A DNA stretch of 64,000 nt from the NCBI GenBank assembly GCA_038496445.1, contig JALMLS010000417.1, positions 1 through 64,000 on the forward strand, read 5' to 3'. This document shows positions 5,862 to 56,013 of the stretch, one piece after another. The position numbers and the translations under genes were made by a program. The stretch comes from Trichosphaerium sp. ATCC 40318. Lineage: Eukaryota; Protista; Tubulinea. Position 1 is the first letter of the stretch. Each line of letters opens with the position of its first letter. Below the pieces are notes generated by a model, which worked only from the letters and a program-made list of their open reading frames with translations, had not been told where the DNA came from and searched no databases.

Positions 5862-7123
5862 ATGATGATAACAAGAAGCAAACGGCGGCGCAGAGCACCT
5901 GTTACGCCTGTACTAGTGTAAATAACCTATTTTCCTTCTTTTTCTGTAATTCTTCACGCAAATACCGATTTATTAACTTCTGACGCGTTTGTTATAGGAA
6001 TACGCACTCAATATTCGATTTACCGTCGGAAATAATAAAAGAAATTCTAAATTTCTGCCCTTCGACTTTACCAACAGCGCATTCATGTCAATACCTTTAT
6101 AAACTCATTGTAGAGCATATAGGGTATAGAAGAATCTATATAAAGACAGAAGAAGACTTTAACGTCCTTTCAAAAAGTCCTCTACTGAAGAACACGTTTG
6201 TTTACTGCCATTTCGAAGAGGCAAGGAATAGGCATATAAAAAAACTATCAGGTATCCAAAGACTATGTCTTAGGAAATGTAAGAAAGTAACAAATATGGG
6301 TATAAGATCGTTATCTGGTATACAATTTCTTAATATAAGACAAACAACAAAGATAACTCATAAAGGACTTCGTGCACTTAAAGGAATACAAACACTTTTA
6401 GTTTATGGATCAAAGAGTCTAACAGATGAAGGTCTTAAGGCTATTTCAGGTGTACAAAAGATAGATATCGGTCAGTGTGAGAAAATAACGGATGAAGGTA
6501 TACGTCATTTATCAGGTGTTCATACAATAGATCTTTACGGTACATCTGTTTCTGAGAAAGGACTTAGAGGTATTTCAGGTGTTCATACAATAAATCTATC
6601 TTATTGTAAGTCAGTTACAAATGAAGGTGTCAGAGCTCTTGCTGGTGTTTATAAGATAAATCTCACTGGCTGTACTAGAGTATCAGATGAAGGCATTAAG
6701 GCATTAAAAGGTGTACATACACTTAACATTAGCGGACTTGATATCACTGATAAAGCGATATCATCACTTGGAGGTGTTTATGATATTGAGCTCTCCAATT
6801 GTGAAAACGTCACTGATGTAGGTATTAAGGCGCTTAAGGGTGTTCATACTATACATATTCGTCATTGTGATAAGATTACTGATGAAGGTATTAAAGCTAT
6901 TGCTGGCGCACATACGATTGATATGACTTTTTGTTCTGCTATTACAGATGAAGGTGTTAAGTCACTTGCTGGTGCTCATACTATTTGGATGGATAGGTGT
7001 TTTCATGTTACTGATGAAGGTATTTCTGCTCTTAAAGGTATTAAAAAGATAAGTGTTCTTGGGTTGACAAAAGTAACAAAGGAAGGTTTGTCTGTGTTGC
7101 AAGGTGCAACAATTTACAGTTGA
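5862..7123 (+). CDS. F-box + leucine-rich repeat (AMN1/LRR_CC-like) protein, one 5' intron
   Basis: The frame stays open upstream of the 6296 ORF: SIFDLPSEIIKEILNFC (F-box). It is followed by about 11 repeats of 24 aa (xxITDEGIKALxGVHTIxL). Short first exon MMITRSKRRRRAP from 5862. Confidence 0.85.
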
Positions 7124-12861: not shown

Positions 12862-14471
12862 TCATTCCTTCAATTGACCATTTTCATCCCACTCTTTTGG
12901 ATTGTGTTGTGGCTCATTGTCTTTAAAATATATACGCGATTTCATTTGCCCGGTTTTATGATACTCTATTTGTTTGCCATCTTGTTTATCATCCTTGAAG
13001 TGATATTGTAACCATAACTGATCATTGTCATACCACTCTTTGTGTTCACCTTCTCTCTTGTCATCCTTGAAGTAGCAATGTATACGTAAGTATCCATTCT
13101 CATGCCACCACTTGAATTCACCATCTCTCTTGCCTTCGTTAAAATGGCAAACTGCTTTTTCTTGACCATTCACATAAAAGTCTTTTGTTTTGCAACACTG
13201 ATTATTCTTGTATTTATGGTGACATTTTAGTTTTCCGTTTTCATACCATGCTTTACCTTGATCTTTATATCCTTCATTGTAGAACAGTTGAAATTTTAGC
13301 TGTCCATTGTCATACCATGTTTTTTCTTCACAATGTTTCTTGCCGTTTTTATAGGTGGCTAGGTGAACTAGTTGACTGTTTTCATTCCATGTTTTAGAAA
13401 TACCTTGTTTATTGTCATCTTTATAAAATACTTGGTACTCTAATCTACCGTTTTTATGCCACGTTCTACCCTCACCTTCATTTTTGCCATGTTTGTAAAA
13501 GAAAAGAGATTTTAATTGACCGTTATCATACCACTCTTTTTGTTCACCTTCTTTCTTGCCATTTTGTAAATGACATTGTTGCACTAATTGACCGTTATCA
13601 TACCACTCTTTATATTCACCTTCTCTCTTGTCATCTTTGAACTGACTCTGTTGCAATAACTGACCATTGTCATACCATCGTTTGAATTCACCTTCTCTCT
13701 TGCCATCTATCAAATGAATTTGTGCACGAGACTTACCATTCTCGTACCACTCTTTAGCTAGGCCTTCAATCTCATTGTTTTTGTAATAAAAAAGATGACT
13801 CATTGTACCATTCTCATGCCATTGCTTTGATTCTCCTTCTTTCTTGTCATCTTTGAAGTAGGTTTGGTTGTGTAGTTTACCACTCTCATACCAATATTTA
13901 GCAACACCATGTTTCTTCCCATCTTTATAATAGCACGTTTCTGAAAGAACACCATTCTTGTACCAGAACTTGCATTCCCCTTGCACTCTTTTATGATTAT
14001 CAAAGTAGCATTGGACGGATACCTGACCATTTTCATAAAACTCTTCGTATAATCCTTTCTTCTGTCCACTCCGGTAAAGTCGCTTTTTAACGTTTTTGCT
14101 GTTTTCATAAAGCACCTTTACAAAAAAAACCGTTTCAACACGTGACTGTTTGAAATAAACCTAAAATGTCGTACCTCTTCTATGTCTGGTGCAAAATTAC
14201 CGCCACTGACAACATGTTCAGTGGAGTAGCACCGTAAAGGATAATACCGAAGCATTGTTCTTGAGCTATGTATACAGCTGCAATGCGAACCATACAATGG
14301 CAATATTTTAGTCAATCTTATTTTATGCTTGTAATGTGATTCTCGCATCACCGCATTGGGCATTTTACAGGTTTTATGCATCTTAGGATGCACGTTAACT
14401 ATTGTATATCCTAGTAAGCTGTATCAATACCATCTTATTCTTTATTGTTAAATGTACATACGTCGTAACAT
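12862..14471 (-). CDS. MORN-variant (MORN_2/YwqK-like) repeat protein with spliced N-terminal extension
   Basis: 417-aa exon of about 16 repeats of 24 aa (YKDGKKEGExKxWYENGQL). Two 5' exons: ATG at 14471 (MLRR|), then an intron 14461-14411, then YTIVNVHPKM...RCYSTEH...DIEE| joined to VLYENSK. Confidence 0.85.
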
Positions 14472-41247: not shown

Positions 41248-42126
41248 TTACACAGCATAGTTATACGATTTAACCATTTCGTATCTAATACCCAAGGATT
41301 CAACAGCTTCTTTTGTTATCTTACTTCGTTTCCCTTTGATTCTTATCGTCTTGAGTGACTTCATGTGCTTCAAAACCGAGTTTGTTATGTGTTCACAACA
41401 GTATAGTCCTAGGTTCTCAAGATTTACCAAGTGCTGTAGTCCTCTTTCTGATATTTGGTGACAATTATCCAACGTGAGGTCTTTGACATTTGTCAAACAC
41501 TTAATACCATCATCTGACATATCAGTAATGCTCCCGCGCATATAAACATGAACAGTGTTGACATTGCAAAGATATTTGAACCACGAGTTTTTTGGACTTA
41601 TCTTAATCGTGTGGACATCTCCAAGTGCTTTTATTCCCTCGACAGAGATATACTTACAATCGAAAAGGTTTATAGTGTGTACACCTTTTAAAGCTTTTAA
41701 AGATATATCTGTTACTCTAGTTCGTGTCAAGTTGATACTATGAATGTTTTCCGGTAGTAATCGAAGTATATCTTTGTCTGTAACACCTGAAGCGCCTAGA
41801 TTTATACTACGAACGCCAACAAGGCAAGCCAAGTCGCTTGGAGATAGAATCATTTTCCATGTTGTTTCGATTTCTGTGTTTTTAAGCAAAGGGCTGCCTT
41901 TCAGAACTTGACAATCTGACGATGTGATTAATGTGATCGTATTAAACCCAATGTTATGCCGAATGATGTCGTTAAACATGTGAGAAACTGAAGATGCTCT
42001 AATACGTTGTTCCCTGTTTAGAAAGCGTAGAATAAGCGTCAAAACTTCTGGTGGCAACGGCGGTGGAGGACGGTGTACTACAAGTTTGAAATCTTTCGTC
42101 GGAAAACTTTTCATGCCACGCGACAT
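41248..42126 (-). CDS. F-box + LRR protein, intronless; paralog of 5862-7123
   Basis: LPPEVLTLILRFL F-box; shares the VL..SPLLKNT motif and ALKGVHTINL repeats with the 5862 gene. Confidence 0.87.
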   Translation of the reverse strand: MSRGMKSFPTKDFKLVVHRPPPPLPPEVLTLILRFLNREQRIRASSVSHMFNDIIRHNIGFNTITLITSSDCQVLKGSPLLKNTEIETTWKMILSPSDLACLVGVRSINLGASGVTDKDILRLLPENIHSINLTRTRVTDISLKALKGVHTINLFDCKYISVEGIKALGDVHTIKISPKNSWFKYLCNVNTVHVYMRGSITDMSDDGIKCLTNVKDLTLDNCHQISERGLQHLVNLENLGLYCCEHITNSVLKHMKSLKTIRIKGKRSKITKEAVESLGIRYEMVKSYNYAV

Positions 42127-42316
42127 AAGCACGCGACACGTTCTGTCGTAAAGTAAATATCGAGTTGTTTATACAGTACTTTAACTGTGAAGCACGTCGT
42201 TGTACTTTTTAGTTTGCAACGTAAAATGGAAACAGTTTCATCGTAAAAAAAACAAGTCAAACTAATTCTGGATTCTCTTGTCGTTGAACAACTTTAAAGA
42301 ACAAAGAAAACGTTAT

Positions 42317-45572: not shown

Positions 45573-48117
45573 CTATTCGCTTGCGAACTTATCAAACGCC
45601 TTTGAGGCTTGCTCGTTGTTGTCTATGTTACTATTGTCGTCATACTCATGAATATGCCTATCGTCTTCTTCTTTGCTGCTTCGAGTATCGTCGCTTTCTT
45701 CTGTATTTGTTTTAGCTTCCTCGTCACTGGATTCGTCCTTGCTAATAGGTGCTGGTCGTTCCATTAACGAAATCATTGATAGAGTTGATTCTGTTCTAGC
45801 ATCGTTTTGATTTATTCTGTTTAGATATCGAGTACTGACTGTCCTTGATGACATCATAGGTATGCTACCCAGAGAAGAAGGTACTCTGGCTCCTACTACA
45901 GCGGATACAGTTGGTGTTGTGCCACGTGGTACAAGTCTTGTTTGAAAAACGGCCCATCCAAGAGGAAAGAAGTAGTCCCTGACTCTCTTTGAGTATACAA
46001 TGAAGAGTATCAGCAAGCAAACTAATATTATAACCACAAAAACCACAACTGCTGCTGCAATTGTGAGAACAGGAAGACCACACCTCGAGTCATCGAAGCT
46101 GTAGTTTTGCATTAGTAAAGTAAGAAAAACCAAGTGTATGCTTACGCCACTGCTACATGTATTCCGCTATCGTCTTGAACGGCACGTGAAATGTCCTCCT
46201 CGCATTCTTCGTTTGTTGATCCTGATACTTGAATATCTATGACATCAAAGCTTCCTGTAGAACATTGATATGTCATCAAGTCTATCGTCTGTTTAAAAAA
46301 AAAGAGGTCAGAACTTGCCCAATACAACTTCAACCATACCTCGTTTGTTACAGCTACATTAGCTGTAAGCTTACCAGCAATATACGCACAACCTATTACA
46401 GTGTAAGATGATAAATTGATGTGCACAAAGATCTCTTTTTGATACATACCATAAATAGTAACCGAACTGCCTTCTTGGATAACAAGCTCTGAAGAATTAT
46501 CAAAAATAAAGTCTCCAACGATCGTGATAGTATCCATAAGAATAAGGGAAGTATTGGCTAAACTGACGTTTCCTCTTACAGTTTGAGAAACTGTAATAGT
46601 TATAGAGGCTAGTAACATAAGTTAGGAAGAATACTAAATAAGAAAAACTCTACCTCCATGTGCTTCAATTCCGCCCTCAACTAAACTAGGTTCATCAAGG
46701 ACTATGACTTCATTTGTGATGGTGGTAACGTTTTCAAAAGGCTCCAATGTAGGTGATGTAGTTGGTGTAAAAGGTGGCAATGAAGGTGGTTCTGTGGTAG
46801 GAGGGAAGGTTGTAGGTGGTTCTGTAGTTGGTGGCGCAGCGTTAGGTGATATAGTAGTAGGAGGCATTGTTGTTTGTGTCGGTGTAACTGTAGGTGGTAT
46901 TGGTGCGTTTGTTGGTGGATCTGTAACAGGTGCGTTTGAGGGTGACTCAGTTGGTGGTATTGGTGGATTTGTTTGTACAGGTGCGTTTGTAGGCGCTTCA
47001 GTGGGAGGCGGTACTGGTGCATTAGTGGGTGAAATGTTGGTGGAGGTACTGGTGCGTTAGTGGGAGCATCAGTAGGTGACACAGGCATGTTTGTAGGCGG
47101 ATTTGTAGAAGGATTTGGCGGCTGTGTAACTCCTTTTTTGATATGCATGTTGAGGTGTTCATCAAACTCGATAGAAATATGTTCAATAGCGTTTTTCCGT
47201 AATGGACTAGAGATAAGTACACTATCAAAATATTCTTGTTCTGACTCAGCCAATACACCCACAAAGGCTTCTGTATCGAACTTGGGAATATTAGCTTGAA
47301 AAAAACTGGAAAAGAAACAAAATCACGTGCTTGATGGCTATGTTGAGTGAATGTGTATTTAAATTCAAGCTTATGCATTAGCGTCAACGTATACTGTCCC
47401 TTTTGAATGTAAAATCTGATACTTCGTATTCTATCTTCAGAAGAAGTATGAATTCGAAGTCCTTGAATGTGTAAGAACCTCCCAAGTTCCGAACGTTGCT
47501 TACCTGTTTGTGATGACGCTTCGCTTGTTTGGAAGAATACCTAGGCGCAGATTGAGAGAAGAGAAAAAACACAAAGTAGAAAAGTCTCCACTCCTTGGAA
47601 TTGTCCACTTACTGCGTTTATGTTCGTGTTGTTTGTGAAACTCCTAAAGAAGTCTTGAGATGGTGTATTACACTTGTATGACCGTACGCTCCAACCCTCA
47701 AACTTGAACCCTAAACAAACCAGTTAGGAAATAAAAAACAGTTATGGTTAGGGTATCACGTGACCTTATATGGTGTGAGCATCATTGTTCTGTTTATTTT
47801 TCGTTTATTTCCATTTACGGCACTTTTGAACTTTAATGTAGTTCCCACAGCTCCAACGGTGCGTCGGAGATTTACTACGCCTATCCATTGTTCGTAAGAA
47901 CCAATTAAAATTAATTTGCACTACTTGGTGTGTTTTTCAATGCCTTCAAGAAGAGGTCACTGTTGTTTGATGCATAATTAACACCTTTTGATGAAGCTGT
48001 TAGTGATGAAATAGTCAATGACGAAGATGAGCGTATACCTGGTGTAGAATGGAATAGTTTGTATGATAAACATGCTGTACAGCTTATAATAAATAATATG
48101 AATACACTACGGTACAT
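45573..48117 (-). CDS. Type I surface protein with Pro/Thr-rich stalk; apparent frameshift at about 47033
   Basis: Signal peptide MYRSVFILFIISCTACLS; PT repeats 46745-47130; beta-rich GDFIFDNSSELVI..GCAYIAGKL domain; TM LPVLTIAAAVVVFVVIILVCLLILFIVY; acidic tail. Confidence 0.7.
46745..47130 (-). repeat. Coding Pro/Thr-rich tandem repeats (PTNAP/PPTTEP)
   Basis: Repeated PTxAP and PPTxxP units in the translation. Confidence 0.8.
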
Positions 48118-48629: not shown

Positions 48630-49932
48630 GCAATCTCTGTTTAAATTTGTGTGCTGAAAAAACTACAAATCACATTAGTTTTGTAATTGTTGGATAGGAT
48701 TCTTAAGTTTTTTTGAAGTTTTAGTTCTTTCGTTACCTTTATTGTAGTGAGCAGCATCCAAAATGACCCCAAGAATACAAAAACGTGCCAAAATTGATGT
48801 GAGTGAAACTAAACCTTACATTTAGGAGACGGTGTTATAGAAGCTATTGATTAAGCTAGGCGTGCTTTGCATTTTGTTTGAAAAAAAAAAGAGAAAAAAC
48901 TTGTATTGACGAACCCAAATATCAAAATATCCTGGGGCGAATCGTTCAGGTATCAACGTATAAAAGAAGAAAAATCCAATAGCAAACAATACATAAACTA
49001 GTGTTATCCTCCATACAAATATTGAAACATCTACAACAAGTTTTTTTAGTTAAACACATGTGACATAACACTAAAACGGTACCTTCACTGTATAAGCCTT
49101 TAAGATAAATCCAATGCAAGAATGGTAATATGCTTGCGCCAACATATGACACAAACAAAGCTGCCCTGAAGCTCGCGTACTTTAAGTGAGAAGCAACTGG
49201 TGTTGGTAAAGCTAGAACTAAAAATACAGCAATTCCTAATCATTGTAGTTTTAGCCTACACTGACTCTTGTATTTAAATTGTACCAAGTATAGCGTCCAC
49301 TGAAGTGTATATTGCCTTAGAAATACGTTAGGATACCAAAACCTGTCCAAGATGGAGTGACACGCACTTGATAGTAAGGGAAACAAAGATATCCATAATA
49401 AATTGCTGGTACACACGTGCCGGAAATACACTAATCCAATTTAGATCATAGATTGTCTATAACGATCATAATACGTACAAGTGATATACCAGCAAAGTCT
49501 ATACGCCTACAGAGAGTGTTTGCTTAAAAAGAAAGTTAGTGGTGCTTGAAATCGTCAGTTACGCTTATTGTTGTTTATCTAGGCGTAAGAAGGTGTCGTA
49601 CCGTGAGGACCCATACAAAAAAATGTGTGGTAAACAGCAGAGCAAAAGAAGCATAAGGCGTTACTCAGTAGGCCACAGGTGAATACTAAACGGTCAAATA
49701 AAGGGTATCCAGCCATTAAGTGATTATAAACGTAATACGGCATTGAAATGTATATAAAGAACGGTAATAAGTGCGTCCATATATTGATTGTTTCATTATG
49801 GCACTGACAAGTAGATTTCAGTGCTTGGGGCAATGTAAGTTTTTGTCTGTATCCTGTCTTAATATACTCGTTGCTACGTATGTATTGTGGCGTTTCCTCA
49901 TACTTTAGTAAGCGTTTACGGTTGTAGCTCAT
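48630..49932 (-). CDS. PAQR/adiponectin-receptor (HlyIII) family membrane protein; 3' end approximate
   Basis: NEYIKTGYR..HNETINIWTHL; CSAVYHTFFC; IDFAGISL; PERFAPGYFDI; HSHQFWHVFV. Confidence 0.9.
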
Positions 49933-50152
49933 CACAAATCGAAAAAAAGCAATCGCTCGAAGTCAGTCAAAGGTATTCTTCAAAGATTGAAAGAATGTTC
50001 GTTTGCCCATGTTGTGCTCATTTATGTTTTCTCCCAACTGAAGCAAGCAGTCATTGGTACGTTGCACCATATCCTAAAAATTGGTTGTGGTGCGACATAA
50101 TGTTCCGGAAAAAAGTAACAATCTTTTACACTAACAAGTTGGCTTTTATTCA

Positions 50153-53100
50153 TTACACCTTACTCACAAATAATGAGCTCGCAAGAGACATATGAGGTTT
50201 GATATCTTGCCCTGTTGGTAGTATGTAAGCGTTAGCGATGCAAACCAAAAACTACTTAAAATAGATCTATCACGTGCCTAAAACGTTGTGTACTGCTTCT
50301 TGAGCTTTTGAAACGAGTAAGACAGATTCTTCTTTGTGTTGAGAGAATACTGATTGAAAAGCGTACAAAGCAATCACTTGAAGAAAAAACGTTAATACAA
50401 CCATTTTTTGGAAAAGTTACAAGAATGTACCTGTTAACCAAACACTCAATTCTTCGATACCAGACTCTTTCATCTTCTCTAAAACTTCTTTTTTAGATAT
50501 ACCCAATACATTGTATAGCGATTCACAATCAGAAAATAAGCCTGAAGCATCTTGTGCTAGTATAAAAGTATCGAACTTTCTAACCTAAACTGAGCGTTAA
50601 ATTGACAAAAACTTTTTACACTGCAACCATACATTAGGGTTTTTAGCTTTGACAAACTTATTAACAACAGCACTTGGCTTTGTCGGGGAAGGCTTCATGG
50701 GCGTGTTCAATACACCCGAAGGTTTTTTTGGTTCATCAGATTTTAATGCCTCTAATCGCTTCATCAAATCATCATCCGCTACTCGTTGTTCAGTGCTTGG
50801 TTTCGAAAGAGCGCTATTTATTGTGTCACCATGGCTAATTCCTGATGATAAATTTGCTAATCGCCTTTCAAGTTCATCATCCATTTGTTCTTGCTCGTAT
50901 TTTGAAGTTGATGTCATGGTAGTTTGAACAAGACCGCCTGCAACATCCAAGGATAGTTCGTCCAAGACGCAATGCATTAATTCATCAGTCTCCTCTTCTA
51001 CATCATCATCGTACATACAATCATCCATACACTCATCAATCAAGTTTGATTTACTCAGCGCCTATTTGTAATAACTTTAATAAAGAGATGAAACTGTTTC
51101 TACAAAAAAAATTCGTAGTTACATTCATGGTGGCAGTAGGACTTAACATGCTGCCAGCTTTTCCAATAGCATCATATAGTTTTATTGCTTCAGGTGACGG
51201 CTAAACAGTACTAGTGTAAGTAACACACTAAACGTAAACAATAAATCTCATGGGAAATTAAGTCACGTGACATTTCTTCCAGAGAAGTGAAATTACCTTT
51301 CCGCTTTGATGCATTTCCAAGGTACATTTCCCTATTTGTGCCATTGCTCTCAGGTGGTCCTGTTTACTAGCTCTCAATCTATGCACATATTAATCAAACA
51401 AGTCAATAAAAGAACCTTGCAGGCCAGACTCGTTGCTTCAAGTACTCACCCTACTAAATATCGACAGAACAGTCGTGCTCCATTTATGTTATTGCTCTTT
51501 GCTGCTTTCCTATACGCAGACGCTAGTTAAAACCATTGCAGAAGGAAGAACCTAACTTACTTGATATCTCGTTTATATTTCATCTCTTCGCGCTCTTTCT
51601 TCCTTAATTCTCTCCTTAAATGTCTTTCCTCGGACTTTAACCTCATTTTTACTTCACGAATTGTAGGTCCATTTTTACCAAAAAGCCATCCATACCAAGA
51701 TTGATTACCAACAGTATTTGAAGAAGCTTTGTTTGTAACTTTTATATCTTTTTGAATTTCTTGTGTTTTCATCGCATCAGTATTTTCTCTCACTGTCTCT
51801 TCATCAACACCAACAAGAGAAGTCTCACTTGTGATGATATGCCACCTTTAAACAAATAAAAGTTAATCACGTGCACTTGTTAATGAAACAATTTAATCAA
51901 AACAACTTTTTTTACCTTTTTGCTAAAGCCACAACATCCACGGAAAGACCACTACAAAACCGATCAACAAAACTCAGCTACCAAGTTCAAGTCAACGTAC
52001 CTTCCACTCAAGAAAGATTGCTGGATTATAGCATTTCTAACAGCAATCCTAACAAGGCTGGAAGACTCAATTACATCACTTGTGTCAACAGGGATTTTAA
52101 TTTCACCAATTCGAACAAACTGAGGGTTTTCAGGCATATTTTTCAACAAAATACAACGTGCAGCATGCTCAGTGCCCATAAAAACAGTTCCTTGCCTAAA
52201 CATTACTTAGCCTTATCGATCACACTATTAAAAGAACGTACGACTCGAACTTTGTAGTGATATCACAAAGATCAACACGAACAACAGTTTCTTTAAGGGA
52301 ATGTTGAAGTAACCCCATGACAGGCTTTTCTATTCGCTCTGAATTGGTAACAGAAATACACTATTTTTAAGTCAGCATTTGAGAGTTAAGTAAGAGTTTT
52401 GAGAGCGAAGGAATAACAAAAATTTTACCTTTCCTTGACCGCTATCAGCTATACGTTGTACAAGAGCCTTTCCTGCATTATCAATACCAACAGTATTGAC
52501 TTCACAATGAAACGAGCTGTTTGTGACACGTTTGTTTACAAGTGAAACTATTTCGTTACCATTTGATACATCTCCATCAGTCTAAGTATTTACTCTCTTT
52601 GTTAGAATCTAACAACCATATAGATAGCGTGTTTATACACGTACCAGTAAGAATATCTTACGTGAACTCAGGCCTTCACATTTAGAATCAAAAGCGAACG
52701 TTAATGGTTCCAGAATACGAGTGCCACCTTTTTTTTGAAAATTTTGTGTAAGTTTTTTTTTTGCAATGCAAAGAATGCTTGGTTACCCATATCAGCTCCC
52801 ATATCTTCTATGTGTTTTGTCGCTTGTGTAAAACTTTCTGTGTTGTATTGTGTACTAGAAGCGAAAAGACTCGAAATCTCAGTGCCGAAGCTCACAACTA
52901 CAGACATAAAAAAGTCAGGTTGTAAAAACTAAAAAAAGTATGTTCTCCTTACTGTTAAAAGTAGAGCGTTGAGGTAAGGATCTCAAAATCAGCTGTAAAC
53001 AGTTTTTGGCTTGCTGTATCCTACTACCAGACATTGAACCACTCCTAACATAAAGTAAGTTTCTTAGATTTAATAGTTTAAAGTACCTATCGATGATGAA

Positions 53101-54258
53101 TATGAAATCCATGTTTGTCAACGCCTCTTTCTTCTGTTTATCAGCGATTCTTCCAGATAATACAAGTGCATATTCTTCTTTATCGCCAACGATACCACGT
53201 GCTATATGGCACATATAATTGCTTAGGCTTTCTTTAACACCAATGTCTAGTTTAAATGCAGCAGCATTGTTTTCTTTCCATGAAGCAACTACGCTGAGCT
53301 AGAAGTGTAGGTTTAATAAACGCGTGTATGCCATTGGTAACGTACTGCACCGCTTGAAGAGCTTGTCGTTTTAATGTCATGAGAAGGAGAAGTTACTTTG
53401 TCAATGTGTTTAACATCCACATCAACTTCAACTTTATATTCTTTGAACATAGACGGATTTGCGACGTCTTTGGTAAGGGTATTAGTGGCATCCATTGCGC
53501 TACCAAGTAGAGGCAATACAAACGATAAACGATTATCATCTAGCAATTATAAGTACACAACATAATTTGTTAGAATACATTACCTTCAATCTGGAGAGGA
53601 ACATCATAGGCAATCTTGAAAAAAGTACAAAGTCAGATTTTTAAGTTCTTAACAATCACTAAGTTGTACCATTACAGATATTTGCTCTTTAGGACTAATG
53701 TTGCCTAGAGACAATTTATATTTACCGTCCACATCTCCTAATAATATGAGAAGTTAGCTGCTACCACGGATGGTAATATTTCTGACAACGAACCTGCTTC
53801 TAACAAATATGCACTTTTCCCAGAACTTATTGCATCGTCATACTTTTCAAACGCACGACTACGGGTCTTACTCTTCGACAATATTCTCTTACCACTTGGC
53901 AATGTAATAATAAAGTCATGAAGTACAGCATGAGGTTGATAAAAAGATAAACTAAAGAAGTTCAGCTCGTCTTCTTTCAGTTTTTTTTTTCTTTAACGGA
54001 TTTTACAGTTGCAAATTACACAATGCATGGCTTTTAAGTTTTGAAGGTGTATTTGGGTTTAAACGTACGTTGCTTCGACAGGGGAGCTTGAATTATTACA
54101 AAAGGATTGCGTTATTTTAACCGACGCCGTAAAACCAATAATATCAGCTTTTACATACACTTTATGCGCGTCAATACTATTTTTACGTAAATATGCGTAC
54201 CTGACTTTAATTCGGGTTTAACGGATCCTGTCAGATTAATGGTACATGCTTGAGCCAT
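50153..54258 (-). CDS. VIT + vWA (VWA5A/BCSC-1-like) protein with inserted ESCRT-III (Vps24/Vps2-like) domain
   Basis: VIT (QSFCNNSSSPVEA..AFEKYDDAISSGKSAYLL..LGNISP); vWA MIDAS (FIFIIDR|SGSM, GT, LLTDG); WHIITSETSLVGVDE; then the ESCRT-III segment; then a C-terminal LAQDASGLF..VWLT|VIAL..F...EE..LLVSKA domain. Confidence 0.85.
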
Positions 54259-54541
54259 TGTGAGGAGCCGGTGTAACTCTAATACACTCTTCGCGAAAAT
54301 ACAGGACATTTTTTTCCTTGAACAGTGCCATTCCTTTGTCCGTCTGTTCACCCTTCGAAAGTGCATCTAACCATTGCCAACAGAGTAATGAACGTACGTG
54401 TATATTATTTACAAAGATGTACAGATCACATGTGTCAAAAACGCCGAACGGCTTAACTTGCTTCTTGTTTAAGCTCGCTGTGCTTTTTCATAACCTCCAA
54501 CTGTCATATACTAGTTGGTTTAACGTCATAGCGTAGAAAAA

Positions 54542-56013
54542 ATGCACTATGATCATAGTGCGCACATGAATAACGAAGAAATCGCTTCAACAGTCAAAAG
54601 TCAATTTTCTGACCACCAATTCATGCTTTTAATCAATACTTTACGCGCATCAGGTGCCTTAGGGCTTGTGGTACACAAAACGAAACTCTATACGCAATCT
54701 AACGTTTCCTACTGGGTTCTCTATTCATTGTAATCTCGTTTCTTTGGATTGGTAGGAAATCACGACAGTTTCCACAACATTTAATTTTCTGGCTTGGTTT
54801 ATCTGACGGCGCATTGGCATTATCTTTGTACTAAATGACAGTACCATAGGCAGTGACATATATTATTGACACATTTTTTTATTTACTTAGGTTAATGGGA
54901 ACATTCAAGGATCCGAAAACAGGCCTTTCAGTCACGTGGTGTCACATACAAGCACGTGATCAAATTTTGATATGTTTTTAGGGTTTTTTGTTGATTTCCA
55001 TTTCTGACTCTTAGCTGAAGGCTTTTAATGCTCAATTTTGGGCTTTAGCTAATATTCTTTGGGTACTCGTTATTGCTGTTAAATTATACCTAAGATACAG
55101 GTTTGATGTTGAAGCCAAAGTGCTCCAAGAGTACAAACTTTTGTTGTCGAAATAAGAGTTCAGAAAAAAATTAATAGTACATTATAGGTGGCATGTACCT
55201 TCACACTGCCTTTGTTGGGGTCTACCTGCGATAACATGCCTCGTCATAACTGCCATAAGAGGTTGGGGAAGTGGCCCTGCATGGTTACTTTTTGTTTTGC
55301 CTATTTATTTATTGTATTTTCTTATTAACAAAGAGCAAGGTGCTGGATTGGTGGAGATGATAGACTCTTTATAGCTAGATTTGTGGGGTTTTACTTATAC
55401 GTGATTGGTGTTTTTCTAGCCATTTTAATTGTACGTACTGAAGAAGGCAAAGAGAAATTTACATGTTCAACATGAATTTGTTGAGTGAGTGACTTTAACT
55501 GGAGTACTTAGATTTATATCATGTTAATCGCTCGCATTCTAAAAAGAACTCCTAAAGTATTTTCTTCTACTGTCCTTGAAGATCTTGACGATTACTTTGA
55601 AAATGAACAGAGTCTCAGAAAGAAAATTACATTTCGTGTATCCCTTTATCTCTTGTCTTTTATCATCGCATGGGTACCTTTGTATTTCGTTTTTATTGAT
55701 TTAATATGTAAAAGGGAGGTGGTTTGGTTAATAGAGTTTATGGGTGGTGGACTGGCGGACATGTAAGCTTTGTACTGTGGATGGTAATCAACAGAAATAA
55801 TTTCTTGTTTTTTTCTTATTTTTGTTTTAGATTCAAGTTGCGTGTGTCCCAGTACAGGGTATCTTTGATGCAATTGTATATGGGTTAAACAGGAATACAG
55901 TGTTACAATACAAAGAGTTCTTTTGTGGTGCACAGATGCGTAGAAAGTCATATTCAGCAACACTCAACACAAACGTGGATGAAACTGATGTGGAACCTAT
56001 TTTCTATGGATGA
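54542..56013 (+). CDS. G-protein-coupled receptor, cAMP-receptor-like (CAR/Crl/GCR1 class), multi-exon
   Basis: WCHIQ|AFNAQFWALANILWVLVIAVKLY; HCLCWGLPAI; WGSGPAW|CWI; RVSLYLLSFIIAW; PVQGIFDAIVYGLN. Confidence 0.85.

Follow-up and report, generated by a model that had tools for sequence, protein, structure and literature searches.

Whether an ESCRT-III module can be housed inside a VIT-vWA protein, and what it could do there, is the question raised by the locus analysed here, located on the minus strand of a 64-kb window (the whole stretch of DNA under study). Nearly all ESCRT-III subunits are small proteins that stand alone, and VWA5A/BCSC-1 is conserved and cytosolic, with a molecular function that is poorly understood. 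The preliminary description of this DNA proposed that a VWA5A-type protein is interrupted by an ESCRT-III domain carrying two MIM1 motifs, in an undescribed fusion that might co-polymerise with ESCRT-III or recruit Vps4. The peptides on which this proposal was built are all found at the locus, on that strand. The locus corresponds to one real, expressed gene encoding a probably cytosolic VWA5A/Vwa1-type protein with a Vps2/CHMP2-like insert in its loop; its features are collected in the Table.

The structure of the gene is derived from transcript contigs of four runs belonging to two independent studies, from 2015 and 2023. Spliced contigs from these studies carry every junction of the 22 exons; GT-AG introns were read from these contigs and the remainder was fixed by contig and depth arithmetic. 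The transcription start site corresponds to the loose end of a template-switch (SMART) oligo, which is the sole cap-site signature seen. The start codon is located at 54258 and the coding sequence extends from 54258 to 50153 (minus strand), where it ends with a TAA codon (50155-50153) followed by an AATAAA signal (50150-50145). Translation of the spliced coding sequence gives an uninterrupted frame of 948 aa. The intron between exons 1 and 2 measures 41 nt (54160-54200), in agreement with the frame and with depth arithmetic, and an intron of 24 nt at this place was rejected because it yields a stop. The last intron (50212-50277) is of the GC-AG type.

Table. Features of the gene and of its product within the 64-kb window (aa, residue numbers in the spliced protein)
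Feature	Position	Strand	Basis or remark
Whole transcription unit	50145..54436	-	Spliced contigs; TSS 54436, 22 exons, 948-aa product
VIT domain, exons 2-5, aa ~20-135	53584..54159	-	Pfam VIT on exons 2 and 3
vWA core with complete MIDAS	52570..53091	-	DRSGS aa 270-274, GGT aa 339-341, TDGD aa 367-370, read from the spliced protein
Junction exon 15, aa 535-628	51561..51845	-	Genome and contigs of all four runs contiguous, frame open
a1-a2 hairpin, aa 587-672, exons 15-17	51309..51688	-	Profile alignment, positions 3-88
Degenerate, shortened a3-a4, aa 673-705	51053..51308	-	Profile alignment
Alternative 3′ splice site	51062..51074	-	13 extra bases; contig of run X3 uses 51074
Acidic a5 helix including DELMHCVLDELSLDVAGGLV, aa 706-747	50927..51052	-	Profile alignment
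MIM1 motif a, DDELERRLANLS, aa 763-774	50846..50881	-	Regex and profile; final K/R of the consensus replaced by S
MIM1 motif b, DDDLMKRLEALK, aa 798-809	50741..50776	-	Full consensus; regex, and aligned with P0006 at its C-terminal MIM1
Pro/Lys-rich linker, aa 810-845	50633..50740	-	From second MIM1 to C-terminal domain
48-nt GT-AG intron	50585..50632	-	Junction in all four runs; ESCRT-III exon to C-terminal domain exon, in frame
Putative C-terminal domain of VWA5A/Vwa1 type (exons 20-22), aa 846-948	50156..50584	-	Position and length

Recognition of the VIT domain comes from Pfam, which matches exon 2 with 28.4 bits (profile positions 3-36; gathering threshold 26.5) and exon 3 with 22.5 bits (positions 42-85), the two matches being collinear. 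The MIDAS of the vWA core is complete; the 30-aa exon 8, which contains the DxSxS motif, reaches 17.7 bits with Pfam VWA_3 (E 0.0038), a score below gathering for what is a short piece. By eye, the first 40 residues show no obvious signal peptide. The exons of the C-terminal domain gave nothing in Pfam or in the Atlas, and this domain is the putative counterpart of the VWA5A C-terminal domain by its position, its length of ~100 aa and its likeness in alignment. An Atlas feature search with the vWA exons likewise returned nothing, and phmmer with a VIT exon against the PDB gave no meaningful match.

The order and lengths of these elements fit what has been described for VWA5A/BCSC-1 and Dictyostelium Vwa1, namely VIT, vWA with MIDAS, VITpt2 strand, long loop and helical C-terminal domain of ~100 aa (PMC10539598). 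A disordered and heterogeneous loop followed by a docking C-terminal domain has been described for both Vwa1 and human VWA5A; the loop tethers this autoinhibitory domain in both proteins, the docking on vWA and its autoinhibition being a prediction in the case of Vwa1 (PMC10539598). The amoeba insert is placed exactly at this loop. The described loops contain no recognised domain, whereas that of the amoeba protein holds a Vps2 module, and neither Snf7 nor ESCRT is mentioned in the Vwa1/VWA5A paper (PMC10539598). The cpRAS-VWA system (PMC2430557) was also considered; it concerns another type of vWA and is not relevant.

On its 5′ side, the fusion occurs within a single exon. Exon 15 encodes successively a VITpt2-type strand, WHIITSETSLVGV (aa 535-547), a linker of 37 aa, the Vps2 start WLFGK (aa 587-591) and helix a1, and the passage from VWA5A-type linker to ESCRT-III start in one exon was thus correctly perceived from the outset. 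The next exon (51450-51509, minus strand) encodes KAAKSNNINGARLFCRYLV, and a single exon (50633-51061, minus strand) contains the acidic helix together with the two MIM1-like motifs. The module occupies aa 587-809 of the 948 residues, is tethered at both ends and has no initiator Met; its ~225 codons are distributed over five exons, all open, with four internal introns spliced in frame. On the 3′ side, a linker of 36 aa is followed, across the 48-nt intron, by the ~100-aa domain located by position, length and alignment, as expected if the VWA5A-type C-terminal domain resumes past the insert.

Separate transcripts for the two parts had been regarded as a possible outcome of cDNA analysis; instead, one spliced contig of 2788 nt covers the exons for VIT and vWA, the ESCRT-III-like exons and those of the C-terminal domain. 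The proposal of an in-frame, transcribed fusion is confirmed by the spliced contigs of the two studies, by the exon that contains the junction and by the open frame of 948 aa. The opposite reading, that no fusion exists at the protein level and that read-through or contig assembly has merged two neighbouring or nested genes, would draw on the fact that contigs by themselves are no proof of a single molecule, and on a possible additional product initiated internally at M559. It is nevertheless extremely improbable. A single exon contains the junction, with neither a stop nor an ATG where Vps2 starts, a canonical 48-nt intron makes the connection on the 3′ side in 4/4 runs, and the only cap-site signature is that at 54436; misassembly and separate genes were rejected on these grounds.

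The identity of the insert has been approached through profiles of the CHMP2A/Did4 family. With a profile built from 109 sequences, the whole protein scores 51.0 bits, and the N- and C-halves 33.9 and 34.7, whereas none of 3000 shuffled controls exceeds 10.1; a profile built from 6 sequences gives 63.6, 24.0 and 56.2 bits, respectively. The module spans the family consensus from residue 3 to the C-terminal MIM1, and its charge is split between a basic N-half (+15; aa 587-702) and an acidic C-half (-18). This split, the two MIM1 consensus motifs and the profile scores bear out the proposed homology to ESCRT-III. When the last module exon was compared by phmmer with 1.84e9 representatives, only two matches were obtained, both with stand-alone CHMP2-type fragments (E 3.8e-5), and P0006, a full-length relative of both fragments, matches CHMP2A at 7e-58 and CHMP3 at 1.8e-16 or weaker. 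Given these matches and E-values, CHMP2 is preferred over CHMP3: of the initial Vps24/Vps2-like label, the Vps2/CHMP2 part stands and the Vps24/CHMP3 part has to be dropped. As judged from sequence comparison, we are dealing with a true homologue of ESCRT-III proteins, of Vps2/CHMP2 (Did4) type and not of Vps24/CHMP3 type.

Pfam scans of single exons yielded little, the pieces being too short. An Atlas feature search with the module exon returned Snf7/CHMP2b clusters, and Pfam Snf7 (PF03357) on the last module exon alone gave 20.5 bits (E 4e-4; cut-off 27.3) over a stretch that includes the residues linking one MIM1 motif to the other; none of the remaining exons, taken singly, matched Snf7. 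With the last module exon, phmmer against the PDB gave no meaningful match and a metagenome scan found no relative. Compared with Vps2/Did4/CHMP2A, the module shares the W-L-F-G start, the basic a1-a2 hairpin of canonical length, the charge split, the EEETDEL..VLDE segment of an acidic a5 and the MIM1 consensus [DE]xxLxxRLxxL[KR], with an identity to the family of only about 27-35%. The differences are that the family consists of stand-alone proteins of ~220 aa, whereas the amoeba module is flanked on either side by the rest of a 948-aa protein and lacks an initiator Met, that its a3-a4 region is degenerate and ~14 residues short, and that MIM1 is doubled and internal.

Along the module, conservation was followed region by region. 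In the 109-sequence profile, the a1-a2 hairpin has only two small gaps, near its start, and it keeps 22 of the 33 conserved hydrophobic positions, as compared with 23/33 in P0003, a divergent but bona fide Vps2-like protein. The a3-a4 segment keeps 3 of the 28 conserved family columns, with 10 columns gapped and hydrophobic positions at background level; MAFFT places the deletion in a2 and hmmalign with the larger profile, which is followed here, places it in a3-a4, the exact location of the ~14-23 missing residues being uncertain. Helix a5 is the best-conserved part of the module (13/13 conserved hydrophobic and 11/14 conserved acidic positions), and DELMHCVLDELSLDVAGGLV is the counterpart of residues 165-184 of yeast Vps2, the peptide bound by Vps4 in its pore (PMC5413351). 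The two MIM1 motifs initially reported are indeed present, at aa 763 and 798 of the spliced protein by regex, the second with the full consensus. In the six frames of the window the pattern [DE]xxLxxRLxxL occurs at these two places only; among CHMP2/Vps2 proteins (n = 125), it is found exactly once near the C-terminus in 115 and twice in none. This duplication, together with its uniqueness in the window, is far beyond chance.

Allelic variation gives a further view of the module. Four of its six SNPs are non-synonymous, which, for so tiny a sample, is compatible with relaxed constraint, and length polymorphisms of 3 and 12 nt in the acidic runs are all in frame. Runs labelled as a further organism, organism B, contain 9-15% of the module 31-mers, which suggests that a relative possesses a conserved copy.

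The best reading of these data, with about an even chance of being correct, is that of a putative Vps4/MIT-docking module carried by a VIT-vWA scaffold. Its main role would be to let proteins with MIT domains, and the AAA ATPase Vps4 in particular, dock and engage. MIT domains would be bound by the pair of MIM1 helices, and Vps4 would grip the conserved acidic segment of a5 in its pore. The basic hairpin a1-a2 may still make contact with ESCRT-III lattices or with acidic membranes; the MIDAS-bearing VIT-vWA scaffold would be brought to sites of ESCRT-III/Vps4 activity. More speculatively, a pull exerted by Vps4 on the loop could free the C-terminal domain from its autoinhibitory position and so activate the scaffold, since the Vwa1 loop tethers a domain predicted to autoinhibit vWA. 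Vps4 is able to accept hairpin or looped chains (PMC6602582), and a co-IP/MS analysis of human VWA5A lists CHMP2A, VPS4B, IST1 and PDCD6IP (ALIX) in a non-specific set of 341 proteins (PMC12540739). Two features of the sequence count against docking: the first MIM1 has no terminal basic residue, and both motifs are internal instead of C-terminal.

Besides the docking module, other functions have to be weighed. A polymerising ESCRT-III subunit would co-assemble with Vps24/Snf7 filaments and tether the MIDAS vWA domain at scission or repair sites. The canonical length of a1-a2, a hydrophobic core on a par with that of P0003, a strongly basic hairpin like that of membrane-binding ESCRT-III, and linkers on either side of the module are all in favour of this role, but the region that has a packing role in the open state is a3-a4, whose degeneracy makes regular polymerisation unlikely, and the membrane-facing N-terminus would carry a load of 586 aa. 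N-terminal fusions usually disturb ESCRT-III function. With so few a3-a4 columns kept, residues missing and a module tethered at both ends, the co-polymerisation initially envisaged is weakened and doubtful, and a polymerising subunit is improbable. A possible, if unlikely, role is that of a bait or integrated decoy. The protein would then belong to a large paralogous VIT-vWA series of this amoeba whose flexible loops display copies of core host proteins; the Vps2 copy would lure pathogen effectors, or host enzymes, that target ESCRT-III/Vps4, and the VIT-vWA and C-terminal parts would constitute a reporter or trap. The retention of interaction surfaces (a5 and MIM1) next to a decayed polymer core is what a recognised but idle mimic would display, and the module is lodged in a flexible loop of Vwa1/VWA5A type; however, tblastn with the 948-aa protein found no paralogue within the 64-kb window, the protein shows no obvious domain for output or signalling, and no published account of such a system was found.

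In an extended and improbable form of the decoy proposal, VIT-vWA scaffolds would serve amoebozoan innate surveillance by displaying host machines attacked by pathogens (ESCRT-III/Vps4, actin/Arp2/3, Rab/SNARE, histones, spliceosome); engagement of the Vps2 integrated decoy by an effector or by a hijacked Vps4 would free the C-terminal domain and activate the MIDAS scaffold. Plant NLR integrated decoys (PMC4246468) similarly contain a copy of a host target within a larger scaffold, with recognition surfaces that outlast function; the amoeba protein differs by having no NLR or signalling module, and the comparison is an analogy only. The insert could also have no function at all, if a duplicated Vps2 gene had landed in the exon of a VWA5A-like loop, had been tolerated on account of the disorder of this loop, and were slowly decaying. 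The degenerate a3-a4, the non-synonymous SNPs, the variable length of the acidic runs and an alternative acceptor that truncates the protein within the module would all suit such a chimera. It is quite improbable, however, in view of the open frame and in-frame splicing across five exons, the intact hydrophobic core of a5, the duplication of MIM1 with its consensus retained, indels that are all multiples of three and the 31-mers shared with organism B.

Precedents for a VIT-vWA combined with Vps2/ESCRT-III were sought in the literature and in sequence collections. No published description of this combination was found, and the claim that the fusion is undescribed holds as far as the literature search extends. 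Neither another VIT-vWA/Vps2 fusion nor the amoeba protein was detected by phmmer among the 1.84e9 representatives with the last module exon, an absence of fusions that is weak evidence because proteins of this genome are missing from the collection (five ORFs of the window were absent from it in an exact look-up). A homologue search with the junction exon gave no candidate, its length filter shutting out full-length fusions for exon-sized queries. In IST1, two MIT-interacting motifs in one tail allow avid or multi-partner MIT binding, and motifs of different MIM types are combined at a free C-terminus. The amoeba module likewise has tandem MIM elements; unlike those of IST1, they are two copies of MIM1, ~35 residues apart and both internal. 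CHMP7 and filactin also contain an ESCRT-III/IST1-type domain within a larger protein, but their partner domains are not VIT-vWA. In CHMP7 the partner consists of ESCRT-II-like winged helices, and in both proteins the ESCRT-III-type domain is terminal instead of lying within a loop. The hybrid protein filactin, found in Amoebozoa, combines an IST1-like with an actin-like domain (PMC8932920).

By physically linking two little-connected systems, the fusion provides a Rosetta-stone hint that VWA5A-type scaffolds may act together with ESCRT-III/Vps4. It would also tell what is retained of Vps2 once there is no need to polymerise, a5 and MIM1 being maintained and a3-a4 being lost, and could be useful to separate the Vps4-recruiting role of Vps2 from its role in filaments. 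If the module were a decoy, it would point to a novel type of amoebal immune sensor.

A further observation concerns the alternative acceptor within the module. Contigs of runs X1, X4 and X5 use the acceptor at 51061, and that of X3 uses the one 13 bases upstream. The latter yields by translation an isoform of 709 aa that ends with TATMNLLQIGAE (its tail reads ...LLQIGAE) and is devoid of a5, of both MIM1 motifs and of the C-terminal domain.

An intron-rich eukaryotic gene on the minus strand, set in a window of 37% G+C, is transcribed into a spliced mRNA that joins a VIT-vWA architecture to a retained set of Vps2 elements. Contigs of four public runs (X1 from a 2015 study; X3, X4 and X5 from one 2023 sample) were compared with positions 49800-54600; all were spliced and of transcript type, the listed joints reading CT..AC on the plus strand, equivalent to GT..AG on the minus strand. 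A single X3 contig of 2788 nt covers the gene from the VIT exons through its 3′ end. Loose contig ends bearing the template-switch (SMART) oligo place the cap site of the fusion gene at 54436 and that of its downstream neighbour at 49940. Contig joints, together with contig and depth arithmetic, yield a model of 22 exons, in which 20 introns are GT-AG (41-117 nt) and the last is GC-AG. The frame is open over 948 aa, from the ATG at 54258 to the stop at 50155-50153, with AATAAA at 50150. Every peptide named in the preliminary description was found on the minus strand of the window, and its claims that a VWA5A-type linker shares one exon with the start of the ESCRT-III domain, and that the C-terminal domain resumes afterwards, are borne out by exon 15 and by the intron removed after exon 19 (Table). 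The downstream neighbour (49000-49940, minus) encodes a membrane protein of the PAQR/haemolysin-III type (Pfam HlyIII, E 4.8e-13 for the first exon); the cap site of this neighbour lies only ~200 nt past the fusion gene's poly(A) signal.

Table. Positions of exons, introns and variants of the fusion gene (forward-strand coordinates).
Feature	Position	Strand	Remark
Exon 15	51561-51845	minus	one exon, holding WHIITSETSLVGV (aa 535-547) and WLFGK (aa 587-591)
Alternative 3′ splice site	51062-51074	minus	13 nt upstream of the main acceptor; used by one X3 contig (2023 sample)
12-nt deletion polymorphism (genome vs transcript contigs)	~51014		acidic MYDDDV run
Exon 19	50633-51061	minus	acidic helix and both MIM1-like motifs
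3-nt deletion polymorphism (genome vs transcript contigs)	~50768		ADDD run directly before second MIM1
48-nt intron	50585-50632	minus	spliced out in all four runs, so that the frame runs on from exon 19 into the exons of the C-terminal domain
Last intron, GC-AG	50212-50277	minus	junction seen in all four runs

When exon 19 was compared by phmmer with a collection of 1.84 billion representative proteins, whose entries do not include the proteins of this genome, just two matches emerged (E 3.8e-5 and 4.8e-4), both of them C-terminal fragments with Pfam Snf7. P0006, a full-length relative of these fragments, matches human CHMP2A at 7e-58, CHMP1B at 6e-20 and CHMP3 at ~2e-16; among its 120 best relatives, those with descriptive names are labelled CHMP2A, Did4, Snf7-domain or SNF7-family proteins. 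The earlier assignment as Vps24/Vps2-like thus holds for Vps2/CHMP2 and falls away for Vps24/CHMP3. The spliced protein aligns with P0006-type CHMP2 proteins over aa 586-773. A custom profile of 109 CHMP2A/Did4 sequences gives 33.9 bits for the N-terminal half of the inserted module (aa 581-702) and 34.7 bits for the C-terminal half; when the N-terminal half was shuffled 3000 times, no score exceeded 10.1 bits. The profile alignment sets in with the W of M-x-W-L-F-G (consensus position 3), so that the insert amounts to a virtually complete Vps2 coding sequence lacking its first two residues.

In the host protein, exon 2 scores 28.4 bits with Pfam VIT, above the gathering score, and exon 3 scores 22.5 bits, the two matches falling on collinear parts of the profile. 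The exon bearing DRSGSMSG matches VWA_3 (Pfam, E 0.0038), and the spliced protein has every element of the MIDAS triad (DxSxS, T, D); inspection by eye revealed no N-terminal signal peptide. The domains are followed by a VITpt2-type strand, a long loop and a tail of ~100 aa, which, judging by its position, length and resemblance to VWA5A, is a putative VWA5A-type C-terminal domain; Pfam and Atlas searches gave no supporting match for its exons. This order of VIT, vWA, VITpt2 strand, loop and tail fits the one described for Dictyostelium Vwa1 and human VWA5A/BCSC-1; in those two proteins the loop is disordered, and docking of the helical C-terminal domain is predicted to autoinhibit the vWA domain (PMC10539598).

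Conservation of the module is uneven. Helices a1-a2 keep 22 of 54 conserved family columns and 22 of 33 hydrophobic core positions, about as many as are found in a genuine but divergent Vps2-like protein; a3-a4 keep 3 of 28 columns and are ~14 residues shorter; the acidic a5 keeps 9 of 19, with hydrophobic (13/13) and acidic (11/14) positions largely intact. Net charge is +15 in the N-terminal half and -18 in the C-terminal half. The segment DELMHCVLDELSLDVAGGLV is the counterpart of yeast Vps2 165-184 (DEIVNKVLDEIGVDLNSQLQ), a peptide bound in the pore of Vps4 (PMC5413351). Across all six frames of the window, the MIM1 pattern [DE]xxLxxRLxxL has just two matches, at aa 763 and aa 798, in agreement with the two MIM1 motifs first noted in the insert. 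A single copy is present in 115 of 125 CHMP2 proteins, the median distance to the C-terminus being 14 residues; two copies occur in none of the 125. The likeness of the two segments (QEQMDDELERRLANLSS vs QRVADDDLMKRLEALKS) suggests that they arose by local duplication.

We infer that the module is mainly a docking site for MIT-domain proteins and Vps4: the two MIM1 motifs would bind MIT-domain proteins, and a5 would be gripped by Vps4. An internal position is compatible with such engagement, since Vps4 takes looped or hairpin substrates (PMC6602582). As the module sits in the stretch that tethers the predicted autoinhibitory C-terminal domain, it is conceivable, if speculative, that engagement might open the scaffold. 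Co-immunoprecipitation and mass spectrometry of human VWA5A recovered CHMP2A, VPS4B, IST1 and PDCD6IP among 341 proteins (PMC12540739), a weak and non-specific support for a VWA5A-ESCRT link. The earlier proposal of a regular, co-polymerising ESCRT-III subunit appears less likely because a3-a4 have decayed and the N-terminus of the module bears a load of 586 aa. The gene might also belong to a display or decoy series of VIT-vWA proteins, rather than being a one-off ESCRT adaptor; recognition surfaces kept while the core decayed would fit this too, but a paralogue of the fusion gene is absent from the window, and we regard this reading as rather improbable.

A full-text literature search found no description of a VIT-vWA plus ESCRT-III/Snf7 architecture. 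CHMP7 is a known larger protein with an ESCRT-III-type domain. Amoebozoan filactin is another (PMC8932920). Unlike the fusion protein, these two have neither VIT-vWA nor a loop insertion of the ESCRT-III-type domain.

Transcript contigs differ from the window by 12 coding SNPs, 6 of them synonymous; six lie within the module, four being non-synonymous, numbers too small for a selection test. Both indels (3 nt and 12 nt) are in frame and in acidic runs, and the reading frame is always kept in the variants observed. Runs labelled organism B (X2, X8-X11) contain 9-15% of sampled 31-mers of the module region (50633-51845), which would fit a conserved copy of ~95% identity in a close relative. Use of the upstream acceptor leads to a 709-aa isoform that stops within the module, ahead of a5, the two MIM1 motifs and the C-terminal domain, all of which it lacks. 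Such a transcript may serve regulated truncation or be targeted by NMD.

Elsewhere in the window, an intron-free ORF of 417 aa (12862-14115, minus) consists almost entirely of MORN_2 repeats (Pfam E 3.7e-60). Two long ORFs of 'GVHTI'-type leucine-rich repeats lie at 6296-7123 (plus; Pfam LRR_6 E 8.8e-25) and 41248-42132 (minus), the latter opening, by eye, with an F-box-like stretch. Positions 46702-47262 are of low complexity and open on both strands, the minus-strand ORF being rich in Pro, His and Gln and the plus-strand ORF in Gly and Val.
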